Below, piece after piece: positions 2,191 to 53,203 of a DNA stretch of 64,000 bases. The first letter of the stretch is position 1; each line of letters opens with the position of its first letter. A program made the translations under genes and the position numbers. The notes beneath the pieces were generated by a model. It did no database searches, had not been told where the DNA came from, and saw only the letters and a program-made list of their open reading frames with translations. The stretch lies in sequence record NC_019410.1. The stretch is one strand, 5' to 3'.

Positions 2191-2222
2191 TTTACCTTTT
2201 GTTAACGTCTGGCCTCTAGGGT
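2191..2222 (+). promoter_or_regulatory. CtrA-box early promoter
   Basis: TTTA-N7-TTAAC, TAGGGT -10-like 15 bp after start of second half-site. Confidence 0.75.
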
Positions 2223-2270
2223 CGCCCTTGTCCCCGCCGCACTCCCGCGCCGGGCAAGGAGCTTCCCGCC

Positions 2271-2456
2271 ATGGTCCCCGACTCGATCATGAACCCCCGC
2301 GACCACTTCCACCGCCTGCGCGAGGAAACCGCCCGCGCTCTGGTCGAGGCCTTCGCCGAATCCGACCCCGGCGAGGATTACCGCGCCGAGGAAAAGGCCG
2401 GCGCGTGGGTTGTCGCCTATTACGACGCGGCGGGCGAATTCGTCGCCTATCTCTAG
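2271..2456 (+). CDS. Early hypothetical protein (61 aa)
   Basis: AAGGAG SD, phage-like codon use. Confidence 0.75.
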   Translation: MVPDSIMNPRDHFHRLREETARALVEAFAESDPGEDYRAEEKAGAWVVAYYDAAGEFVAYL

Positions 2457-2480
2457 CCGCCTTCGCCCCCTGGCGCCGCG

Positions 2481-2512
2481 TTAACGGTTTGTTAACATGT
2501 CGGCGCCAGGGT
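2481..2512 (+). promoter_or_regulatory. CtrA-box early promoter
   Basis: Perfect TTAA-CGGTTTG-TTAAC then CAGGGT. Confidence 0.8.
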
Positions 2513-2555
2513 CGCCCTAGCCCGGCGCGTCGCCGCGCCTTCGGAGAAAACCGCC

Positions 2556-3359
2556 ATGCTCTACACCCCCGCCGCCCGCCGCCTTCGCGGCTATCGCGAA
2601 ACCGCCGCGAAGAACGCCGAAATTCACGCCCGCCCGCACATGGCCGGCAACGTCGCCGGCTACAACGAGTCGGTGTGGCCGACGACGGCGCTAGGCGTCG
2701 CCGCCAAGGCCGGCGCCTTCAAGCGCCCCGAAACCGCCGGCAACTGGTCGGAGGATCGCAAAGCCTATTACGCCCCCGCGTGGCCGGCCGGCTGGCGCGT
2801 GCTGGGCACGGCCGAAGAGGTCTGCCGCAAGGAAGGCTCGCGCCGGGTGGAACATTCCGGATGGTACACGACGCCCGACGACTACAGCGCCACGCTTTCG
2901 GGCTATGTGCTGCAAATCCCCGCCCGCGACGGCCGCCCGCAATACGTCGCCGGGACCGCCCATAGTGAATGGGACGGGGTGACCCTCTACCCCGCCGACC
3001 GCTACGACAACCCGCTTGACGCGGCGAGCGCCGCCGACCGTCACGCCGAACGCGACGCCGAAGAGGAACGCGAATATCAAACCGCGTGGCAAGCGGGCCA
3101 GCGCTACGCCGAACTCGGCGCCGAAGCCAAGGAGGCCCGCAAGGAAGCGCTGGCGATCCTCGCCGAACGCCGCAAGGTCAAGGGGCTGGAAACCCCCGCC
3201 TTGTGCGGCGCGATCCGGGCGCAAGTCGCGGCCCTGCTAGGCCGGATCGAAGAGGCGCGCGCCTCGCGCGCCAAGCTCAAGGAAGGCGAGGACTCGCGCC
3301 TCATGTTCTACCCCTCCGCCGCCATGGTCGCGGCCTTCAATGACGGCGCGGCGTCGTGA
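2556..3359 (+). CDS. Early hypothetical protein (267 aa)
   Basis: GGAG SD; long ORF with normal composition. Confidence 0.85.
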   Translation: MLYTPAARRLRGYRETAAKNAEIHARPHMAGNVAGYNESVWPTTALGVAAKAGAFKRPETAGNWSEDRKAYYAPAWPAGWRVLGTAEEVCRKEGSRRVEHSGWYTTPDDYSATLSGYVLQIPARDGRPQYVAGTAHSEWDGVTLYPADRYDNPLDAASAADRHAERDAEEEREYQTAWQAGQRYAELGAEAKEARKEALAILAERRKVKGLETPALCGAIRAQVAALLGRIEEARASRAKLKEGEDSRLMFYPSAAMVAAFNDGAAS

Positions 3360-3565
3360 AGGTCGCCCGCGATAGCTTCGCCGTGTTCTGGACCCTCCCG
3401 CAAGGCGGGGTCCAATTTCACGCCGACATAAAACGGGCGCTCTATCCGACCGCCCGCGACGCCGCCCGCGCTTTTAGCGCCATGTTCCCCCGTGACCGGG
3501 TCCGGAGCGTCCGCGACGCCTCCGGCCGCTTCCTGGCCTTCAAGGAGTCCGCCCCGTGCGCCTGA
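3356..3565 (+). CDS. Early hypothetical protein (69 aa)
   Basis: GTGA overlap with upstream stop. Confidence 0.7.
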   Translation: MKVARDSFAVFWTLPQGGVQFHADIKRALYPTARDAARAFSAMFPRDRVRSVRDASGRFLAFKESAPCA

Positions 3566-3837
3566 CAAGCTACAACGTCAACGGAACCGGCTTTAAGGGC
3601 GGCTCCGCCCCGCCCGTCCCCGCCCAAGGCCTGACCGGTCACGCCGACGGCTTGAACCTTTGGGTTCCCTCGCGCGAGCATATCGCCGCCATGCTCCCGC
3701 AACGCTGGCGCCACGCCTTCGCCCGCGCGTCGTTTTGGTATGACGCGCACGACAATAAAAAGCCGTGTCGCGCCGACCTCTACGACTCGCGCGGCCGGTA
3801 CCTGACTCAGGTCTGGGCGCACCCGGTTTTCAGCTAG
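3556..3837 (+). CDS. Early hypothetical protein (93 aa)
   Basis: AAGGAG SD before GTG. Confidence 0.75.
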   Translation: MRLTSYNVNGTGFKGGSAPPVPAQGLTGHADGLNLWVPSREHIAAMLPQRWRHAFARASFWYDAHDNKKPCRADLYDSRGRYLTQVWAHPVFS

Positions 3838-3844
3838 GCCAGGA

Positions 3845-3872
3845 CGCCCCGGAAAATCTTCCGGGGCGTTTA
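3845..3872 (+). terminator. Hairpin terminator overlapping next promoter
   Basis: ACGCCCCGGAA...TTCCGGGGCGT followed by T-rich tract. Confidence 0.65.
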
Positions 3873-3900
3873 CCTTTTGTTAACCTCTGGCCTCTAGGGT
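3869..3900 (+). promoter_or_regulatory. CtrA-box early promoter
   Basis: TTTA-CCTTTTG-TTAAC, TAGGGT at 3895. Confidence 0.75.
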
Positions 3901-3958
3901 GACTTTCGCCGCCGGGCAATCCCGCCCGCCGGACCCTCTTTCAAGGATTGCTCCCGTC

Positions 3959-5008
3959 ATGACCTCTCATTCCATGGTCGCGCACCGTTGGGCGCAGGAC
4001 GACGAGAACGGCCGCACCGCGCGCGGCTTCAACATGTATTTCGAGCGCTACGGGCGCGGCGCCGACCGCGTCAACGTGATTTTTTCCTACGGGACTCACT
4101 TCCCGGCCGCCGCCTTCGTGACCGACGCGCACGGCCGCCGCGTGGTTCTGGTGACGACTCGCGGCTACAGCGTTTCGACCGCGAAACACCTTTCCCACAT
4201 CCGCCGCGCCATCCCGTCCGGGACCCCCTGCTTTTCCGTGCCGCACGTGTCGCGGATGCACAAGCCGGGCGGGTCGGGCGACTTCCACGGGGACAACCTG
4301 CGCGCCTATGTCGAGAGCGCCGCCGGCCTCGCCGAAAAGGCCAAGCGCGCCCGCGTCAACGGCCCTTGGCTGCTTAGCCAAGCCCGCGAAACCCTCGCCG
4401 AAGCGCAACGCTACGCCGACGCCTTCAAGCTGAAAACCAAGGTTCCGGCCTTGGAAGACGTCGCCGGCCAATGGGCGAAGATGACGGCCGCCAAGGCGCG
4501 GGCCGAAGCCAAGGCCAAGCGTGACGCCGAAAAGGCCGCCAAGGCGCGCCGCGAAGCCGAACGGCTCGCCGACGCCGAAGCCTTCGCCGCTTGGATGCGC
4601 GGCGAGCGCCAGAGCGCCCCGTTTAGCTACCGGGTGCGCGATGACGGGACCGTCTATCTTCGCCGCTTCCGGGGCGTGGTCCGCGACCTGCGCAGCCAAG
4701 AGCGCGACGGCTCGCGCGTCGATGAACTGCAAACCTCGCAAGGCGCGGCCGTGCCGTGGGAACACGCGGTCAAGGCCTTCCGGTTCATCAAGCTTTGCCG
4801 CGAACGCGGCGAGAGCTTCCACCGCAACGGCCGGGTGATTCGCGTCGGACACTTCCAAGTTGACGCGATCAGCCCGAACGGGGACATGACGGCCGGTTGT
4901 CACCGGTTCGCGTGGGATGAAATCGAACGCCTCGCCAGGGCCGAAGGGGTTTTCGACCTCCCCGCCGACGCTGGCGCCGTCGAAACCCGGCAAGCCGAAC
5001 CGGCCTAA
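3959..5008 (+). CDS. Early hypothetical protein (~349 aa)
   Basis: ATG 3959 after AAGGA; ORF-track start at 3899 lies within the promoter. Confidence 0.85.
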   Translation: MTSHSMVAHRWAQDDENGRTARGFNMYFERYGRGADRVNVIFSYGTHFPAAAFVTDAHGRRVVLVTTRGYSVSTAKHLSHIRRAIPSGTPCFSVPHVSRMHKPGGSGDFHGDNLRAYVESAAGLAEKAKRARVNGPWLLSQARETLAEAQRYADAFKLKTKVPALEDVAGQWAKMTAAKARAEAKAKRDAEKAAKARREAERLADAEAFAAWMRGERQSAPFSYRVRDDGTVYLRRFRGVVRDLRSQERDGSRVDELQTSQGAAVPWEHAVKAFRFIKLCRERGESFHRNGRVIRVGHFQVDAISPNGDMTAGCHRFAWDEIERLARAEGVFDLPADAGAVETRQAEPA

Positions 5009-5063
5009 GCCTCCCCGCCCCTCTCGCGCCCCGGCTCCCCGCCGGGGCGTTTTCGTGTACGCG

Positions 5064-5095
5064 GTAACCTTTTGTTAACTTCTGGCCTCTAGGGT
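5064..5095 (+). promoter_or_regulatory. CtrA-box early promoter
   Basis: GTAA-CCTTTTG-TTAAC, TAGGGT at 5090. Confidence 0.75.
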
Positions 5096-5143
5096 GACTT
5101 TCGCCGCCGGGCAATCCCGCCCGCCGGCCAAGGATCGCAGACT

Positions 5144-5443
5144 ATGAATCTTTTCGTTGTCGCCATTGACCCCGCCCTCATCCCTTCGGCCGCCGGCTTC
5201 GTGGTCGCCTCCCCCTACGGGTGCGGCAAGTGGCGCGCGTGCGTCGGGAGCGAGGCGGACATGATCGCGCTTCGCGACAAGATGCGCCGCGCGCACCCGG
5301 CCCCGGAAGGCTACAGCGTCCAGCCCCTGGCGTCGTTCCTGGCCTATCTGGAGACGGTCGGGGATAGCCCTTATGACCGGTTCCGCGCCCATGACGCCGC
5401 CGCCCGCATCCTTGACACCCTGACGACGCATCTCGCCGCCTAG
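5144..5443 (+). CDS. Early hypothetical protein (99 aa)
   Basis: AAGGA SD. Confidence 0.8.
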   Translation: MNLFVVAIDPALIPSAAGFVVASPYGCGKWRACVGSEADMIALRDKMRRAHPAPEGYSVQPLASFLAYLETVGDSPYDRFRAHDAAARILDTLTTHLAA

Positions 5444-5501
5444 CCCCGCCAAGCCCCCGGCCGCGCGCCGGGGGCGCTTTCCCTCGAAAGGATCGCCGAC
5501 C

Positions 5502-5813
5502 ATGACAACCCGTCTTATCGCCGTTCGCGGCCCGACCGCCGCCGAACTCGCCGACCCGTCCAGCCGCGCGGGCGGCGCCGAAGTCGTTTTCGAGCGCCGC
5601 GACCGCGAAGGCCGCACGCGCCTTGTGTTCGCCTCGACCTGCTACGGCTCATATCAGCAATGGGGCGAAACCCGCGACGTGCTCGCCGACAACGTCGAGG
5701 CGGTCACGCTCTGGGCCGAAGGCATGGCGGCCGTTGCCGCCCTCATCGACGAGAGCGACGACGACGACGAGAGCGACGACGCCCCGGCCGAAGATGACGA
5801 CGGGGAGGCGTGA
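5502..5813 (+). CDS. Early hypothetical protein, acidic tail (103 aa)
   Basis: AAGGA SD; Asp/Glu-rich C-terminus. Confidence 0.8.
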   Translation: MTTRLIAVRGPTAAELADPSSRAGGAEVVFERRDREGRTRLVFASTCYGSYQQWGETRDVLADNVEAVTLWAEGMAAVAALIDESDDDDESDDAPAEDDDGEA

Positions 5814-5816
5814 GCC

Positions 5817-6236
5817 ATGCGCACAACCAAGGCTCAACGCTTCGCCGCCATCGCCTTTGACGCCCTGGCCAAGGCCCTAAGCGAGCCGCGCCAAGCCGTC
5901 GCCCGCGTGACCAAATGGGAGGGCGCGGGCCATAGCTTCGCCAACCTGCAACGCGATTATGAGCGGTACGGCCCCGGCGCCCGCTCATGGTTCGGCCGGG
6001 CTGAAATGCGCTTCTTTGGGACGCGCCTAGAGGCCGCGCCGCTGGATTTCCCGGCGCTGGGCTGCACCCTCTTTCTGACCTCCGAAACCCCGCCCGGCGC
6101 CGGCCGGGTCTGGACCCTTCGCGCCTATGTCTGGGCTTCGGCCGATATCACCACGCTAACCCATGGCGACGAAACCGACGCGGCGACCGCGCAAGCGGCC
6201 TTTGACCTGCTTTGGCGGGTCCTTTCCGGACAGTAA
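5817..6236 (+). CDS. Early hypothetical protein (139 aa)
   Basis: GGAGG SD, operon spacing. Confidence 0.8.
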   Translation: MRTTKAQRFAAIAFDALAKALSEPRQAVARVTKWEGAGHSFANLQRDYERYGPGARSWFGRAEMRFFGTRLEAAPLDFPALGCTLFLTSETPPGAGRVWTLRAYVWASADITTLTHGDETDAATAQAAFDLLWRVLSGQ

Positions 6237-6264
6237 CCTTTTGTTAACTTCTGCCCGCTAGGGT
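6233..6264 (+). promoter_or_regulatory. CtrA-box early promoter
   Basis: GTAA-CCTTTTG-TTAAC, TAGGGT at 6259. Confidence 0.75.
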
Positions 6265-6314
6265 CTTCTTGCGGCCGGGCAATCCCGCCCGGCCGCATCT
6301 TGGAGACAGCGCCC

Positions 6315-6587
6315 ATGACCCGCGCTCAAGCCCTCGCCGACATGAACGCCCTTCCCGGTATCATCGCCTCCTTTGAGCGCGAGACGGGCGAATATCGCGT
6401 GACCCTGCGCTTTGGCCCGCTCCCCATGGGGCGCGGCGCCCAAGAGTGGATGCGCGCGCGCCGCGAAGCCGTCGCCAGCTACAGCGACGACAAGGCCGAC
6501 GCCCTGGCCACCGCCCGCGACATGTCCGCCCGCTGGGAGGCGATGAGCGCCGAAGAGCGTTCGCGCCTCTATCACAACCCCGCCTAA
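6315..6587 (+). CDS. Early hypothetical protein (90 aa)
   Basis: GGAG SD before ATG 6315. Confidence 0.8.
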   Translation: MTRAQALADMNALPGIIASFERETGEYRVTLRFGPLPMGRGAQEWMRARREAVASYSDDKADALATARDMSARWEAMSAEERSRLYHNPA

Positions 6588-6653
6588 GACCCCGCGCGCC
6601 GCCCTGGCCTTCGCCGGGGCGGCTCCCTCAACCCCTCGCAAGGATCGCACCCC

Positions 6654-6938
6654 ATGACCGCCCGTAAGCCCCTGACCAAGGAACAAAAGGCCCGCCGCCG
6701 CGCGACCCGCCGCGCCGCCCGCCTCAACTGGTCGGATGAGCGCCGCGCTCGCGAATTCGAGCGTCAAGCCCGCTTCTTCCTGATGATCGCCACCCGCGCC
6801 CAAGGCGCCGGCCAAGGCCAGGAAGCCGCCCGCCTCGCCACGGTCGCACAACGCAAGGTGACTAACTGGCGCATGGCGCAGGCCTGCGCCCGGATTAACG
6901 CCCTGGCCGCGCATCCGTTCGCGGCCGTGGTCGCCTAA
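6654..6938 (+). CDS. Early basic hypothetical protein (94 aa)
   Basis: AAGGA SD; Arg/Ala-rich. Confidence 0.75.
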   Translation: MTARKPLTKEQKARRRATRRAARLNWSDERRAREFERQARFFLMIATRAQGAGQGQEAARLATVAQRKVTNWRMAQACARINALAAHPFAAVVA

Positions 6939-6951
6939 GGAGGCCCGCCCG

Positions 6952-7134
6952 ATGACGCACCCTCACGCCCTGGCGCTGATCGCCCTCGCCGAAAAGGTGT
7001 TACCGCTTACCCGGCTGCACCCGCTCGACCAACGCGCCGCCGCCGTCGATCTAATCGGCGACCTCTACCGCCTCGCCGACGATATCGACGCGACCCCGCA
7101 AGCCCCCGCCCTGACGCAACCGAAGGCCGCCTAA
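6952..7134 (+). CDS. Early hypothetical protein (60 aa)
   Basis: AAGGAGG SD. Confidence 0.8.
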   Translation: MTHPHALALIALAEKVLPLTRLHPLDQRAAAVDLIGDLYRLADDIDATPQAPALTQPKAA

Positions 7135-7137
7135 GCC

Positions 7138-7728
7138 ATGAACCCGAACCGCTACCGCCTCGCGCCCCGCGACCGCTTCAGCCGTGAGCTTGCCGAAACG
7201 CTCTATCAGGCGGCCGAAGCCGTCGCCCGCGTGATTCCGCTCATGCCGGAGTCCGCCCCCGATGAGCGCCGCGCGCTGGGCAAGGTCCGCGCCGACCTTC
7301 TAACCCATAGCGCCGGCGCCCTTGTTCCCAAGCCGCCGGCCGCCGTGCTCGAAACCCTCGTTTGGGTTGTCGAGATGGCGCAAGATCGCGCGACTAACGC
7401 CGATTTCAACACCGCCCAAGAAGGACTCGACGAGCACGAGTCCCTAGCCTTTGTCGCCGACTGGCTGGAAGCCGAAGGCCAGGACGTGACGCCGATTCGC
7501 AACGCGCAACCGTCCGCCGACGCCCTGGCCGAACTCGCCGCCCGCCGCGACGCCGAACAAGCGGCGCTAGACGCCTTGGAGGCCGAAGCCCTGGCCGAAG
7601 CGCCGGGCGACGTGATCACCGACGCCTTGCGCCCCTATCTGGGCGCCGCCCTGGCCGAAAACCACGCCGACGACGTGCTAGACGCCCTCACGCGCGCCGG
7701 CTTCCAAATCACCCGCAAGGAGGCCTAA
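7138..7728 (+). CDS. Early hypothetical protein (196 aa)
   Basis: Operon spacing, helical composition. Confidence 0.8.
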   Translation: MNPNRYRLAPRDRFSRELAETLYQAAEAVARVIPLMPESAPDERRALGKVRADLLTHSAGALVPKPPAAVLETLVWVVEMAQDRATNADFNTAQEGLDEHESLAFVADWLEAEGQDVTPIRNAQPSADALAELAARRDAEQAALDALEAEALAEAPGDVITDALRPYLGAALAENHADDVLDALTRAGFQITRKEA

Positions 7729-7733
7729 AGCCC

Positions 7734-8312
7734 ATGACCGACTCCGCCAAGATCACCGGCGCGCTCGCGCTACTCGCCATCGCGGCCGATAATCTCCGCC
7801 AAGGCCCGGCCATGTCCAAGGCCGCCGACAACGTCACCAACGTCTGTAACTACGCCCTGACGCGCGCGACCATGCTCAAGGCCGCCGACCAAATCGGCGA
7901 GGCGCTGGAGGCGCTGGGCGCCCTGCAAGCGGGCGGCTATGTGATCGCCCGCCGCCGCGACGTTTTCACCGATGCGGGCGAGAAGCTGGGCGACCTGTTG
8001 GCGGCGCTTTATGACGCCGTCCCGAACTACGCCGTAAGATCGCAGCGCCTCGCCGACGCCCTGAGTCCCGCGCGAAATTACGTCTATCAGCCCCGGTTCC
8101 GGGTCAAGCTGGACGCCGCGCCCGGCGCGCTTTTGACCGACTGCGACACGGGCGCAACGGTCTATTTCCAGCCGGGCGACGACGCCGACGCCTTCCGGGC
8201 CGAATTCGCCCCGTGGGTTCACGCCGCCAACGTGACGGCCGAAGGCGCGGCCCTGGCCTCGATGATGAACCCGACCGCCGAAGAGTATTTCAGCCCCGCC
8301 ACGGGGGTCTAA
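7734..8312 (+). CDS. Early hypothetical protein (192 aa)
   Basis: AAGGAGG SD. Confidence 0.8.
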   Translation: MTDSAKITGALALLAIAADNLRQGPAMSKAADNVTNVCNYALTRATMLKAADQIGEALEALGALQAGGYVIARRRDVFTDAGEKLGDLLAALYDAVPNYAVRSQRLADALSPARNYVYQPRFRVKLDAAPGALLTDCDTGATVYFQPGDDADAFRAEFAPWVHAANVTAEGAALASMMNPTAEEYFSPATGV

Positions 8313-8317
8313 CGCCC

Positions 8318-8620
8318 GTGGCCCTGACCTTCGCCCCGCAATCGACGCGCTACGCCGTGGAAGTCCCCGAACGCGACTTTCTGGCCCTGACCCGCGCCGA
8401 GGAAATTCTAGCCCCTGGCCCCTATCTGGAGCCGTCGCTTAGCGAGCGTTTGGAGGCGCAAGCCGGCGTTTGGGATGTCGAGTATAACGGCCATTTCGGC
8501 GCGGCCGTTTACTTGACGCTCGACGTTGACGCCGACTCCCCGGCCGCCCGCGACGCCCTGGCCTCGATCATCGCCGACCAACTGGCCAAGGCCAAGGCGT
8601 GGAAGCGCCAGCCCGCCTAA
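8318..8620 (+). CDS. Early hypothetical protein (100 aa)
   Basis: GTG 5 nt after upstream stop; ORF-track start at 8213 overlaps upstream gene. Confidence 0.7.
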   Translation: MALTFAPQSTRYAVEVPERDFLALTRAEEILAPGPYLEPSLSERLEAQAGVWDVEYNGHFGAAVYLTLDVDADSPAARDALASIIADQLAKAKAWKRQPA

Positions 8621-8730
8621 GTCATCATTCCTATCGTCTATGACTTGTCACCGGCCGAACTCTTGCCCGGTGACAGTCTGGGCAAGTAAAGCTCACTCTG
8701 GATTTTATGACTTAGCGCAAAGGATTGAAA

Positions 8731-8805
8731 TTGCTCGAAAAATTCCTCGAAGCTCACAAAGTTGTTTTCTGGCTGCTTTTGCTGGCCTGTTTGTGGCGCT
8801 TTTAA
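8731..8805 (+). CDS. 24-aa hydrophobic peptide MLEKFLEAHKVVFWLLLLACLWRF in low-GC patch
   Basis: AAAGGA SD 6 nt before TTG 8731; stop TAA forms first half of CtrA box. Confidence 0.45.
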   Translation: MLEKFLEAHKVVFWLLLLACLWRF

Positions 8806-8834
8806 CGGTTTGTTAACCCCTGGCCCTCTAGGGT
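8802..8834 (+). promoter_or_regulatory. CtrA-box early promoter
   Basis: Perfect TTAA-CGGTTTG-TTAAC, TAGGGT at 8829. Confidence 0.8.
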
Positions 8835-8888
8835 CGAATTCCCGGCGCGGCAATCCCGCCGCCCGGCCTTCCTTCGGAGCTTCTGATC

Positions 8889-9335
8889 ATGTTCGCTTCC
8901 GTGACCCTTCCCGCCCATGACGCCCAAGGCCTGAGCCTCGAAACCGTCCACATGGTTTTCGCCCGCGAACTGGCGCAACATTTCGACCACGTGATTTCCG
9001 CCCCCGTGGTCGAAAGCTGGCGCGACGAGGACACCGGCGCCGACCACGCGCAAGCCGCCGTTTGCTTCACCGTCTCGGCGACCCCCGCCGCGTGGGAAGC
9101 CAAGGGCGGGCGCCTCGCGCGCCGGCTGGAAAACCTCGCCGCGCGCTATGCCGCCGACTGCGACGCCCCGGCCCTGACTGTCACCCACTGCGACGGCCAA
9201 ACGGTCTATGTCGGCGCTCTGGAAGCCCTGGCGCGCCCCGCCCCGGTGCAAGGCCCGACCCGTGAGGCGGACCCGGCTTTCCTCCCCCGCCAGCGTGAGG
9301 ACAAGGCCGCCCGCTTCGATCGCCTGACCGCCTAG
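8889..9335 (+). CDS. Early hypothetical protein (148 aa)
   Basis: GGAG SD. Confidence 0.8.
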   Translation: MFASVTLPAHDAQGLSLETVHMVFARELAQHFDHVISAPVVESWRDEDTGADHAQAAVCFTVSATPAAWEAKGGRLARRLENLAARYAADCDAPALTVTHCDGQTVYVGALEALARPAPVQGPTREADPAFLPRQREDKAARFDRLTA

Positions 9336-9393
9336 CCCCTGGCCTCCCCCTAGCGCACCGCCCCTAGAAAGGCGGTGCGCTTTTCTGTGTCTG

Positions 9394-9426
9394 TTTACTT
9401 GTTGTTAAGGAATAGCCTGCTAGTGT
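9394..9426 (+). promoter_or_regulatory. Degenerate CtrA-box early promoter
   Basis: TTTA-CTTGTTG-TTAA, TAGTGT at 9421. Confidence 0.6.
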
Positions 9427-9477
9427 CCCCTTGTTGGCGGACGCATCCCGCGCCCGCCCCTTTCTGGATCGCTCCCC

Positions 9478-9870
9478 ATGGCTCGCCCCTCTGACCTGCT
9501 CAACGTCAACGCCGCCCGCGTCCTGGCTTGCCTTGAGCCTATCGCCGCCGCCGCTAAGACCGCCCCGGCCGCCGACCGCGCCGCCCTTTCCTACCTGCTC
9601 GACGCTGGCGAGTATGTCGCCGCGTGGCGCCGCAACCTCACGGAAACCGACCGCCGCAAGGCCTATGGCGCGGCCTGCGCCGCCGAAGCCCTGGCGCTCG
9701 CTAACGCCTATCAGCCCGCCACCCTGCAAGGCGGCGCCGTCCGCCGCGCTCTGGGCGCCTATGCCGCCGCCCTAAAGGTCCTGCTAGACGGGGAGCCGGT
9801 CAAGGCGGTGCGCGCCGCCGAAGGCGCGGCGCTTTCGGTCCGCGCTCGCTACGCCAACACCCGCCTTTAA
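9478..9870 (+). CDS. Early hypothetical protein (130 aa)
   Basis: Ala-rich helical ORF. Confidence 0.75.
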   Translation: MARPSDLLNVNAARVLACLEPIAAAAKTAPAADRAALSYLLDAGEYVAAWRRNLTETDRRKAYGAACAAEALALANAYQPATLQGGAVRRALGAYAAALKVLLDGEPVKAVRAAEGAALSVRARYANTRL

Positions 9871-9898
9871 CCTCTTGTTAACACCTCCCGGCTATGGT
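9867..9898 (+). promoter_or_regulatory. CtrA-box early promoter
   Basis: TTAA-CCTCTTG-TTAAC, TATGGT at 9893. Confidence 0.8.
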
Positions 9899-9924
9899 CG
9901 GGAGGTCGCAAGGAGACACCCGAC

Positions 9925-10182: not shown

Positions 10183-10565
10183 GCCACCTAGTATCTTTTT
10201 TGATTCGGAGGGACCCAAAGGCCCCCTACGTTAACCATTTTTGGCGGCGCCCCCCGGCGCCTACGGATCATTTTGAAAAATCGCGTTGACAAAACCGGCA
10301 ATCAACGTCAAGGATCGTGACGTCGAGCAGCCCTGCCCGACACGGGCGGCCCGCCCCCCATTCGCCGCCCGACGGCCCCATCTCCGACGTCCACCGGGGG
10401 TGGGGCCTTTTCATTTTCCAGCCGGGGGACCCAAGGCCCCCTGGCTTTGTAAATCGGATCGCCAAAAGGTCCCTCCAAAAATTTTCAAAACCAGAAACGC
10501 CCGGTTGACACTTCCAGACTTGGCTTCTAAGTGTTGCGCGACGACACGCAATCGAGGAGCCCGTC

Positions 10566-15363: not shown

Positions 15364-16025
15364 GCATCCGGATCGGCGAGCGCCACCTCGAATACACCAC
15401 CGACAAGGTCTACTGGCTCCCGCGCGGCTATTCCAAGCGGAGCGGCCGGTACGTCTATCCGCACCAAGGCTGGTCGTGGACCGAATGGCGCTCGGAGGTC
15501 ACCGACACCTACGAGACCCTGGAACGCGCCCAGCATGCGATCTCCGGCGGCTATCTCAAGGACATGATCAAGAGCCAGGAGATCGTCGACATCGTCATCC
15601 TCCAGGTCCGCACGGTCCGAGAGATCGTCGAGGATCGCACGGTCGTGGCCCATGACCTCGCCGGCAAGCCGCTCGACCGGGCCGAGCCGTCGGTGAGCGC
15701 CCAGGGCCATGTCCTGGAGCCGGGCGCCTATGTCTTCCTCAACTACGACGGCGACGCGGACCCGACCACCTATGCGGTCTACGGCAAGGTCCTGGCCATC
15801 CACGACGACCGCATCAGCCTGTGGGTGATCAACGGGGCCTGGACCATGGTCCTGACCGCCGCCGACGGGACCTTGCGGGTCGCCCCCGACAGCCATGGCC
15901 CCGCCGGGCGCGAGGTCTTCATCCTCTATGCTGGCGAGCCGCCCAATCCCTTGACCGGATCGGACTTCTACACCGACCAGTTCAACGCCTATCTCAAGTT
16001 GCGCGGCCTGGAAGCTGCCGCCTGA
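15360..16025 (+). CDS. Hypothetical protein (221 aa)
   Basis: AAGGAG SD before TTG. Confidence 0.75.
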   Translation: MSIRIGERHLEYTTDKVYWLPRGYSKRSGRYVYPHQGWSWTEWRSEVTDTYETLERAQHAISGGYLKDMIKSQEIVDIVILQVRTVREIVEDRTVVAHDLAGKPLDRAEPSVSAQGHVLEPGAYVFLNYDGDADPTTYAVYGKVLAIHDDRISLWVINGAWTMVLTAADGTLRVAPDSHGPAGREVFILYAGEPPNPLTGSDFYTDQFNAYLKLRGLEAAA

Positions 16026-51837: not shown

Positions 51838-51913
51838 GCCCGATGAGCCAGATGGGAAGGCGCCGCCGTGACATGGCGGGATTGAGAAGGTTCGATTCCT
51901 TCATCAGGCACCA
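51838..51913 (+). tRNA. tRNA-Val (GAC)
   Basis: CCGCC-GTGACAT-GGCGG; G32. Confidence 0.85.
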
Positions 51914-53070: not shown

Positions 53071-53203
53071 TTGACACTCCTCGGAGGCTCGGCTAAAACC
53101 AGCAGCGTCAGAGCGGCGTTGGACCACGAGGTCCGCCGCGAGCTTCTGCGTTGTCGTCAGGAACGGCCCGCCAGCAATCCCGCTGGCGGGTCGTTTCGTT
53201 TTG
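53071..53203 (+). ncRNA. Promoter plus ~95-nt small RNA ending in CAATCCCG-loop hairpin
   Basis: TTGACA-N17-TAAAAC; hairpin GGACC/GGTCC; 11-bp stem 53164-53193 with T-rich tail. Confidence 0.55.

Follow-up and report, generated by a model that had tools for sequence, protein, structure and literature searches.

Covarying stem-loops behind the CtrA-box promoters in the terminal repeat of Caulobacter phage CcrKarma

What is the role of the short, GC-rich stem-loop that recurs just downstream of the CtrA-box promoters of Caulobacter phage CcrKarma? We analyzed a window of 64,000 nucleotides from sequence record NC_019410.1, which corresponds to bases 1-64000 of CcrKarma (JX100811); a 7.7-kb region is 100% identical at the same coordinates. 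All of the stem-loops lie within the direct terminal repeat (DTR) of 10,254 bp, whose 20 small genes are all on the + strand and have no known function. Comparison of gp004-gp020 with Pfam and PHROGs assigned no function apart from one domain of unknown function (DUF). The DTRs of phiCbK-like phages are packed with CtrA-binding sites, which have been taken as a way of reading the host cell cycle ("lytic deferment"), and the phiCbK gp005 and gp018 promoters are bound by CtrA and require it for activity (PMC9437464). That study and the genome paper (PMC3556154) are both silent on any hairpin or stem-loop, and a full-text literature search found no account of these leader hairpins. The analysis shows that the hairpin is under selection for pairing, and it is an undescribed element, though most likely of a known kind, the 5' leader stem-loop.

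Selected pairing downstream of the promoters

An earlier note on this DNA had placed a stem-loop with the loop motif CAATCCCG at 3917, 5112, 6280 and 8851, and with the variants CACTCCCG at 2240 and CATCCCG at 9444, just downstream of six CtrA-box promoters. All of these motifs were found on the + strand, and arm-swap and alignment tests agreed with the description of a real, pair-preserving hairpin with a constant loop in a fixed place behind CtrA promoters. The six loops read AAUCCC (four), ACUCCC (one) and AUCCC (one), and each lies downstream of a TTAA-N7-TTAAC/G box. CAATCCCG occurs nine times in the window against 3.47 expected, a number reached in 0 of 100 shuffles, and the box matches 15 times against 0.69 expected, always below 9.9 kb. 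Six is the correct count for promoters with the hairpins described, but the DTR holds eight promoters in total, with additional units at 2481 and 9867.

Evidence for pairing came from an alignment (A1) of 26 distinct, related AAUCCC hairpins with a 10-bp stem, in which 88.5% of cells were paired, compared to 33-53% when partners were slid by 1-3 columns. Covariation among homologues, which had been proposed as a check, was present: 0 of 500 shuffles reached the observed value, pair 7-28 was GC in 12 sequences and CG in eight, and pairs 10-25 and 11-24 also swapped. When arms were exchanged among paralogues, pairing fell from 7.5 of 9 positions with own arms to 4.4 of 9 (p = 0.0014). Because the sequences in A1 are related, a within-genome arm-swap was added as a control, and in 13 of 13 genomes own arms (7.2-8.2 of 9) paired better than foreign ones (4.2-6.6; p from 0 to 0.03). 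Compensated changes were also evident at individual loci. The A.C mismatch in the Karma hairpin upstream of gp019 is a G-C pair in BL10, BL57 and RBC8, and the stem of BL57_6461 is lengthened by matched extra bases, including an extra A-U pair. Given this arm specificity, covariation and compensation, the hairpin is real and selected for pairing; what is conserved is pairing and not stem sequence, as in 5'-terminal stabilizing stem-loops.

Single-sequence folding gave modest z-scores relative to shuffles (0.0 to -3.7), as is to be expected in a genome with a GC content of 66%, and these are too weak to stand by themselves. In six of eight promoters, the best hairpin with a start 4-12 nt behind the -10 hexamer had an energy of -11 kcal/mol or lower, compared to 21.5% of random genome positions, and hairpins were much stronger at the promoters than at random genome positions (Mann-Whitney p = 3e-4). 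Rfam 15 returned only tRNAs at the gathering score across the window, and nothing relevant at E up to 10 between 2150 and 10000.

The eight units are all on the + strand. Promoter 1 (2191..2222), upstream of gp004, has the CtrA box TTTACCTTTTGTTAAC at 2191-2206 and the -10 hexamer TAGGGT at 2217-2222, and is followed by hairpin 1 (2233..2254; CCCGCCGC / ACUCCC / GCGCCGGG, with one C.C mismatch). Promoter 2 (within 2481..2539; box 2481-2496, -10 CAGGGT 2507-2512) carries a hairpin of another loop family, GGCGCG/UCGC/CGCGCC, at 2524-2539, and its phiCbK orthologue, the gp005 promoter, is CtrA-dependent (PMC9437464). Promoter 3 (3869..3900; CtrA box, -10 TAGGGT 3895-3900) lies upstream of gp008, adjoins a terminator at 3842-3871 and is followed by hairpin 3 (3909..3932, loop AAUCCC at 3918-3923), which scored 46.4 bits with a covariance model based on A1. 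Promoter 4 (5064..5095; CtrA box, -10 5090-5095), upstream of gp009, adjoins a terminator at 5026-5050 and is followed by hairpin 4 (5103..5128, loop AAUCCC at 5113-5118; 48.7 bits), a duplicate of hairpin 3. Since units 3869 and 5064 show no difference up to the end of the hairpin, they are counted as recent duplicates and not as independent examples.

Promoter 5 (6233..6264; CtrA box, -10 6259-6264) precedes gp012-gp017. Its hairpin 5 (6270..6297; 51.6 bits, z = -3.66) begins at the predicted +1 and has the perfect stem claimed for it, with 10 G/C pairs plus one U-A pair below an AAUCCC loop. Promoter 6 (8802..8834; CtrA box, -10 8829-8834), upstream of gp018, is another whose phiCbK orthologue is CtrA-dependent (PMC9437464). 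In hairpin 6 (8842..8866, loop AAUCCC, 1-nt bulge; 38.2 bits) the reported G-C/C-G swap is present as the fourth pair of the inner stem GCGGC/GCCGC, where C-G replaces G-C. Promoter 7 (9393..9426), with a CtrA box ending in TTAAG and the -10 hexamer TAGTGT at 9421-9426, lies upstream of gp019 and after a terminator at 9352-9381; its hairpin 7 (9436..9458) is GGCGGACGC / AUCCC / GCGCCCGCC, with one A.C mismatch. Promoter 8 (9867..9906; box 9867-9882) has no leader hairpin and belongs to what we call class B, in which an 8-bp inverted repeat (ACCUCCCG / CGGGAGGU, 9883-9906) brackets the -10 hexamer GCTATGGT.

A repeated promoter-leader cassette in related phages

For comparison we used the DTRs of phiCbK, Magneto, Swift, Rogue, Ccr2, Ccr5, Ccr29, CcrBL10, BL57, RBC8, CcrPW and Colossus, and compiled a catalog of 148 CtrA-box units from 13 related phages. 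A search in relatives had also been proposed, and the element proved to be kept in Shapiro-, Poindexter- and Colossusviruses; IMG/VR and JGI metagenomes, searched for more relatives, returned known isolates and chance matches only. Across the catalog the -10 hexamer has the form TAG(G/T)GT and lies 10-11 nt after the CtrA box, which is therefore placed at -35, the usual position of the site in CtrA-activated promoters (PMC11264516). The distance from the -10 hexamer to the start of the hairpin is 5-11 nt in the main loop families. Because transcription is expected to begin about 7 nt after the -10, the hairpin should form the extreme 5' end of the mRNA, with the predicted RNA start 0-4 nt before the stem and the stem beginning at +1 to +4. 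Most CtrA-driven promoters in the DTRs of Karma and its relatives have such a GC-rich hairpin at the predicted RNA start.

The loops fall into families, of which AAUCCC (47 units, 17 distinct hairpins) and AUCCC (19 units, five distinct hairpins) are joined by ACUCCC, ACUUCC, GAUCCC, AACCC, ACCCC and ACACC, and elsewhere by UCGC, CUGGAAA and CCAG. Colossus-type phages have AUCCC, ACCCC, AUCGG and CGG, the last two families belonging to them. Colossus and CcrPW each have about 20 promoters with hairpin-CUGGAG-ATG behind them and hardly any spacer, such that the stem abuts the Shine-Dalgarno (SD) sequence. Orthologous gp004 leaders have loops of the ACUCCC, GAUCCC, ACUUCC, AAUCCC or CCAG type depending on the phage, and the gp012 leader of BL57 has the hairpin GGGCGGGGG/AUCG/CCCCCGCCC. 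The constant feature at orthologous leaders is the hairpin and not the loop, whose family is swapped, which indicates that AAUCCC is not obligatory. Orthologues were also seen to share an entire identical hairpin, with a freely variable spacer to the ATG.

The promoter and its stem-loop together form a repeated cassette, with eight units in Karma, about 20 each in Colossus and CcrPW, and signs of recombination. Cassettes have been replaced at orthologous genes, as at gp018 between Karma and Rogue and at gp004 over five loop families, and DTR gene content differs between phages at cassette borders (PMC9437464). Ccr29 contains a duplicated gp013-gp018 block (L008:9825-12400). At its left junction (L008:9780-9830), a gp019-type promoter and leader start (…CTCCTTG) is fused to the gp013 coding sequence, the ATG of gp013 being replaced by TTG and both hairpin and SD being lost. 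This chimeric junction is direct evidence of recombination at cassettes.

With somewhat less than even confidence, we propose that the element is a leader stem-loop at the 5' terminus of the RNA, belonging to a promoter-leader cassette that is repeated and recombines, and that it may shield the mRNA and free the ribosome-binding site. The cassette would run from a CtrA box at -35 through the -10 hexamer TAG(G/T)GT and 5-11 nt of sequence to a GC hairpin of 5-13 bp, and then through a short pyrimidine-rich spacer to the SD and start codon. Host RNA polymerase with CtrA~P would start about 7 nt after the -10. A base-paired 5' end could then impede RppH and RNase E, whose attack depends on the 5' end, and the hairpin could keep the adjacent ribosome-binding site from alternative pairings, such that early messages would be long-lived and well translated once the terminal repeat enters the swarmer cell. 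The CtrA box and -10 are evident from the sequence, and CtrA dependence has been published for two phiCbK orthologues (PMC9437464).

A protective role is suggested by the known action of two leader stem-loops. The leader hairpin of E. coli ompA and the phage T7 gene 10 leader are 5'-terminal stabilizing stem-loops of highly expressed messages. As in these, a stable hairpin lies near the predicted 5' end with an accessible ribosome-binding site after it, and it is pairing and not stem sequence that counts, which fits the covariation and the exchangeable loop families. Unlike these, the phage hairpin belongs to a cassette with 8-20 copies per genome and follows a promoter under cell-cycle regulation, the 14-nt top of its commonest version is invariant, and its 5' end is predicted. 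There is also a likeness to the T4-type "PeSL", short repeated modules of early promoter and stem-loop around small variable early genes, associated with gene shuffling. In the PeSL, reportedly described by Arbiol and colleagues in 2010, the stem-loop is said to precede the promoter as terminator of the previous gene, whereas here it follows the promoter, in the leader, and the promoter needs host CtrA.

Nearly all of the promoters behind the phage CtrA boxes also carry a conserved structured leader, of which the literature searched gives no description. Should the hairpin determine message stability or be the target of a factor, the first genes after injection would come under a second layer of control. 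As a 25-nt element with natural covarying variants, the hairpin also offers a compact handle for work on early phage takeover and mRNA decay in Caulobacter. If it is only a stabilizer, it is an ordinary device in unusually systematic use.

The invariant core and competing explanations

Several observations weigh against a leader stem-loop that acts simply as a stabilizer. The 14-nt core GGC-AAUCCC-GCC is invariant in 26 of 26 distinct copies, in which the outer stems and both flanks vary; a pure stabilizer does not need an invariant asymmetric core, and the model leaves the invariant loop unexplained. The A1-based covariance model, run on the 64 kb, found only the four Karma copies at 38-52 bits. 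Among the next matches, all below 20 bits, is an annotated rho-independent terminator after the tRNA cluster (53167..53190, + strand, outside the DTR) with the same loop. Its hairpin is CCCGCCAGC-AAUCCC-GCUGGCGGG with the top GC-AAUCCC-GC and a U-rich tail, UCGUUUCGUUUU, and its orthologues have AAUCCC (BL57), AUCCC (Rogue) or UUCCC (BL10). One such leader is also present in the distantly related Brevundimonas phage Bajun, on the stem GAGGC/GCCUC, and the Bertelyvirus CcrSC, which infects the same host, uses another type of promoter with no GC leader hairpin. Transcription of the 5' arm is predicted from promoter geometry, and in a class B promoter the 5' arm of the inverted repeat would lie upstream of the start, outside its own RNA. 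Finally, mismatches among the hairpins are mostly C.C (16), with five G.U and three A.C, the latter two counts giving no clear strand signal for a role as RNA rather than DNA.

The early promoters of CcrSC (L277:6000-23000) have a TTAAG-GTTAAC box far upstream, followed by CTGTTGACA…TATGCGAGA; their leader is short, lacks structure and ends in GGGAGACACCCC-ATG.

The most frequent cassette family is recognizable by the loop (A)AUCCC and the GC pairs that close it. Either some factor reads this loop, or it is homogenized by recombination. If it is read, a phage or host protein would recognize the GGC-AAUCCC-GCC leader top and control all early units together, through antitermination (N/boxB- or TAR-like), translational repression or timed decay, an explanation that we regard as unlikely. 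It would account for a core that stays invariant in 26 copies with variable outer stems and flanks, for an asymmetric loop that occurs only in the sense orientation, and for the same top in Bajun on the unrelated stem GAGGC/GCCUC. The sole candidate partner seen is gp013 (6654..6938, + strand), a 94-aa early protein of the same repeat with an Arg-rich N-terminal stretch (residues ~9-33; KEQKARRRATRRAARLNW, or RQRRAAARLNWSDEKR in Colossus and CcrPW) that ends in a conserved LNWSDE, LNWSDE(R/K)R. It is kept in all Shapiro- and Poindexterviruses and also in Colossusviruses (copies at L031:16094-16393 and L032:14919-15218), being present in every phage of the set with (A)AUCCC hairpins, and no homologue was detected in the sampled regions of CcrSC, which has no hairpins, or of Bajun. 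It is possibly an RNA-binding protein, and we presume a likeness to the lambda N peptide. Against this explanation, however, the co-occurrence of gp013 and hairpin follows phylogeny, gp013 has no Pfam or PDB relative and belongs to a PHROG without function, the loop family changes from one orthologous leader to another, and some loops have only 3-4 nt.

Antitermination at a boxB/nut-like site, bypassing several internal terminators, was one mechanism offered in the earlier note, and neither part of it was borne out. As in lambda nut, a promoter-proximal hairpin with a constant loop and variable stem occurs in early phage RNA, and a small Arg-rich protein is encoded nearby. Here, however, the loops are pyrimidine-rich, with 5-6 nt (AAUCCC, AUCCC, ACUCCC, ACUUCC and the like on stems of 5-13 bp), and not the purine-rich, GNRA-like pentaloop of boxB, the hairpin is at the predicted extreme 5' end, and gp013 has no homology to N. 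No boxA (CGCUCUUA-like) is shared beside the hairpins, where the leader flanks differ; a loose CU-rich tract is present in some leaders, such as CCCUCUUUC after 3932, and is lacking in units 2191 and 5064. In place of a few sites ahead of read-through terminators, there is one hairpin per promoter, and the strong DTR terminators (3842-3871, 5026-5050, 9352-9381 and 10374-10407) are at unit ends, three of the four directly before a new promoter and the fourth after the last unit. The sole internal candidate, inside the gp009-gp011 unit (5453-5475), would give an antiterminator something to bypass, but it is weak. The conAn system of plasmid pLS20 similarly adds a regulatory layer to genes on the first DNA to enter a new cell, but it serves a long operon with many terminators through its own protein-plus-RNA pair (PMC6294495), and no sequence or protein related to it was found here. 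The broadest form of this idea, in which GGC-AAUCCC-GCC would be the recognition site of one post-transcriptional or elongation switch over all CtrA pre-early transcripts, for example by gp013 in an N/boxB- or Tat/TAR-like manner and perhaps as a general device of first-entering DNA, is decidedly doubtful.

The repeat could also act as DNA, either as the operator of a phage shut-off repressor at about +1 to +25 (around the -10 in class B) or as a non-template-strand or cruciform structure that tunes the open complex or promoter escape. The inverted repeats of class B bracket the -10 with a 5' arm upstream of the predicted start, the palindrome of BL57_6461 reaches the -10 hexamer and thus bases predicted to be untranscribed, orthologues keep the whole hairpin sequence and not pairing alone, and there is no clear excess of G.U. 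A dimeric-repressor operator would have conserved symmetric half-sites around a free spacer; in this case the half-sites differ and covary and the asymmetric 6-nt spacer is invariant. In addition, all three non-Watson-Crick pairs in class B repeats are G.T on the + strand, the tandem G.U pairs of CcrPW 16022 correspond to G-C in Colossus, and the same hairpin top serves the terminator at 53167, which is a role as RNA. The invariant asymmetric spacer, covarying half-sites, tandem G.U pairs and terminator use favor a single-stranded + strand role over a dimer operator, and we consider action as DNA rather unlikely. It is improbable, too, that the invariant loop is a mere by-product of cassette spread and recombinational homogenization, with any stable hairpin sufficing, the spread resembling that of the T4-type cassettes and AAUCCC being the loop of whichever copy was most successful. 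The identical units 3869 and 5064, the whole-cassette replacements at gp018 and gp004, the chimeric promoter-gp013 junction and duplicated block of Ccr29, and the variable gene content at cassette borders (PMC9437464) are all consistent with it. So is the absence of a general preference for the loop: AAUCCC as a universally favored hexaloop was rejected, since only one of 119 viral hairpins sampled on the stem GCCGGGC/GCCCGGC has it. Homogenization should, however, also have erased the differences in the outer stems and flanks, which have diverged where the core has not, and the core recurs on unrelated stems in terminator 53167, in Bajun and in a chromosomal leader of the Caulobacteraceae. 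A leader attenuator or pause site before the first gene is very improbable. Several leaders do have a pyrimidine-rich stretch after the GC hairpin, such as CCUUCCUUC after 8866, but there is no U tract, the terminator scan did not call the leader hairpins, Colossus-type stems directly abut CUGGAG, and expression is strong from reporters with the promoter region of phiCbK gp018 (PMC9437464).

Other partners for the loop or its flanks were considered and rejected or set aside. Pairing of AUCC in the loop with a GGAU-type SD is contradicted by the roughly half of AAUCCC leaders that use GGAG or GGAA and by the use of GGAU at hairpin-less DTR genes as well; GGAU-type SD sequences are overrepresented in the DTR, preceding three of six hairpin-led genes as against six of 86 others. 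Pairing of the discriminator, which directly follows the -10, with the SD across the hairpin was found in 69 of 108 folds versus 42 of 108, and showed no unit-specific complementarity (within-genome permutation p = 0.14-0.93). The host small RNA CcnA has an active CCCC loop and targets GGGG (PMC8959179), and its own CCCC loop would not pair with a UCCC loop. The resemblance of ATCCC to a DnaA box does not extend to the flanks, which are unlike the classical box. The phage tRNA-Val gene (51838-51913) contains CGGGAUUG at 51877-51884, an exact complement of the 8-nt CAAUCCCG, which is within chance.

Class B promoters, bacterial hairpins and neighboring sequence

In class B promoters the 8-bp inverted repeat follows directly after the CtrA box and brackets the -10 (ACCUCCCG-GCTATGGT-CGGGAGGU in Karma). 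Examples are located at 9883-9906 in the window and at L004:2907-2932, L004:6274-6298, L011:4293-4316 and L276:7556-7579. The arms are fully compensated in at least 12 distinct versions, and this type is dominant in Brevundimonas phage Bajun. The repeat either forms a structure in the DNA or its non-template strand, or folds as an RNA hairpin in read-through transcripts.

The 18-mer CCGGGCAATCCCGCCCGG was found at a minimum of 120 scattered sites when 185,579 reference genomes were scanned. Among the matches listed, at least 16, and roughly 25-30 judging by common flanks, share one context in Burkholderiales and Xanthomonadales, in which a conserved element of ~120 nt lies upstream of the hairpin and a CU-rich spacer and an SD lead from the hairpin to a DUF2958 or RadC-JAB gene. 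The hairpin CCGGGC-AAUCCC-GCCCGG lies 8-25 nt before the start codons of these genes in Variovorax, Luteimonas, Xenophilus, Paucibacter and others (L086:2629-2700, L076:4691-4750, L135:4527-4590, L101:6460-6535 and ~20 more among the matches listed). DUF2958 and RadC-JAB genes are typical of integrative and conjugative elements, and the hairpin may be an unannotated leader element of these; Rfam had no match at the sites. Downstream genes were found in the AAUCCC-sense orientation in 26 distinct contexts and in the opposite one in 13 among the matches listed, although these contexts are not independent. The bacterial parallels may reflect convergence or chance.

A metagenome-assembled genome of the Caulobacteraceae (L097:630-735, minus strand) has two TCACGC-N3-GCGTGA palindromes followed by TATGGT, 6-7 nt, the hairpin GUCGCCGGGC-AAUCCC-GCCCGGCGGC, GGAG and ATG, leading into a 31-aa hydrophobic open reading frame and then an HTH_3 protein. 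The design of this leader is that of the phage one, but without a CtrA box.

Elsewhere in the Karma repeat, dense clusters of GTTAAC/TTAAG half-sites at 1983-2090 and 790-840 add up to numerous overlapping CtrA-like boxes that no gene directly follows. Relatives have such clusters at corresponding positions (L004:2143, L011:2114, L276:5949-6100 and 15851-15990, L277:3097 and 22932), and the array may bind CtrA for some purpose other than activating promoters. The stretch 845-990, directly behind the truncated terminase reading frame at the repeat's left end, contains six or seven copies of GGGGACCCUGG plus an AAAU-like tract at a spacing of ~20-24 nt; one idea is that this is a protein-binding array near the packaging end. 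Lastly, although the repeat is otherwise 66% GC, an AT-rich island without an annotated gene lies between gp017 and promoter 6 (8621-8800) and holds the inverted repeat TTGTCACCGG ... CCGGTGACA.

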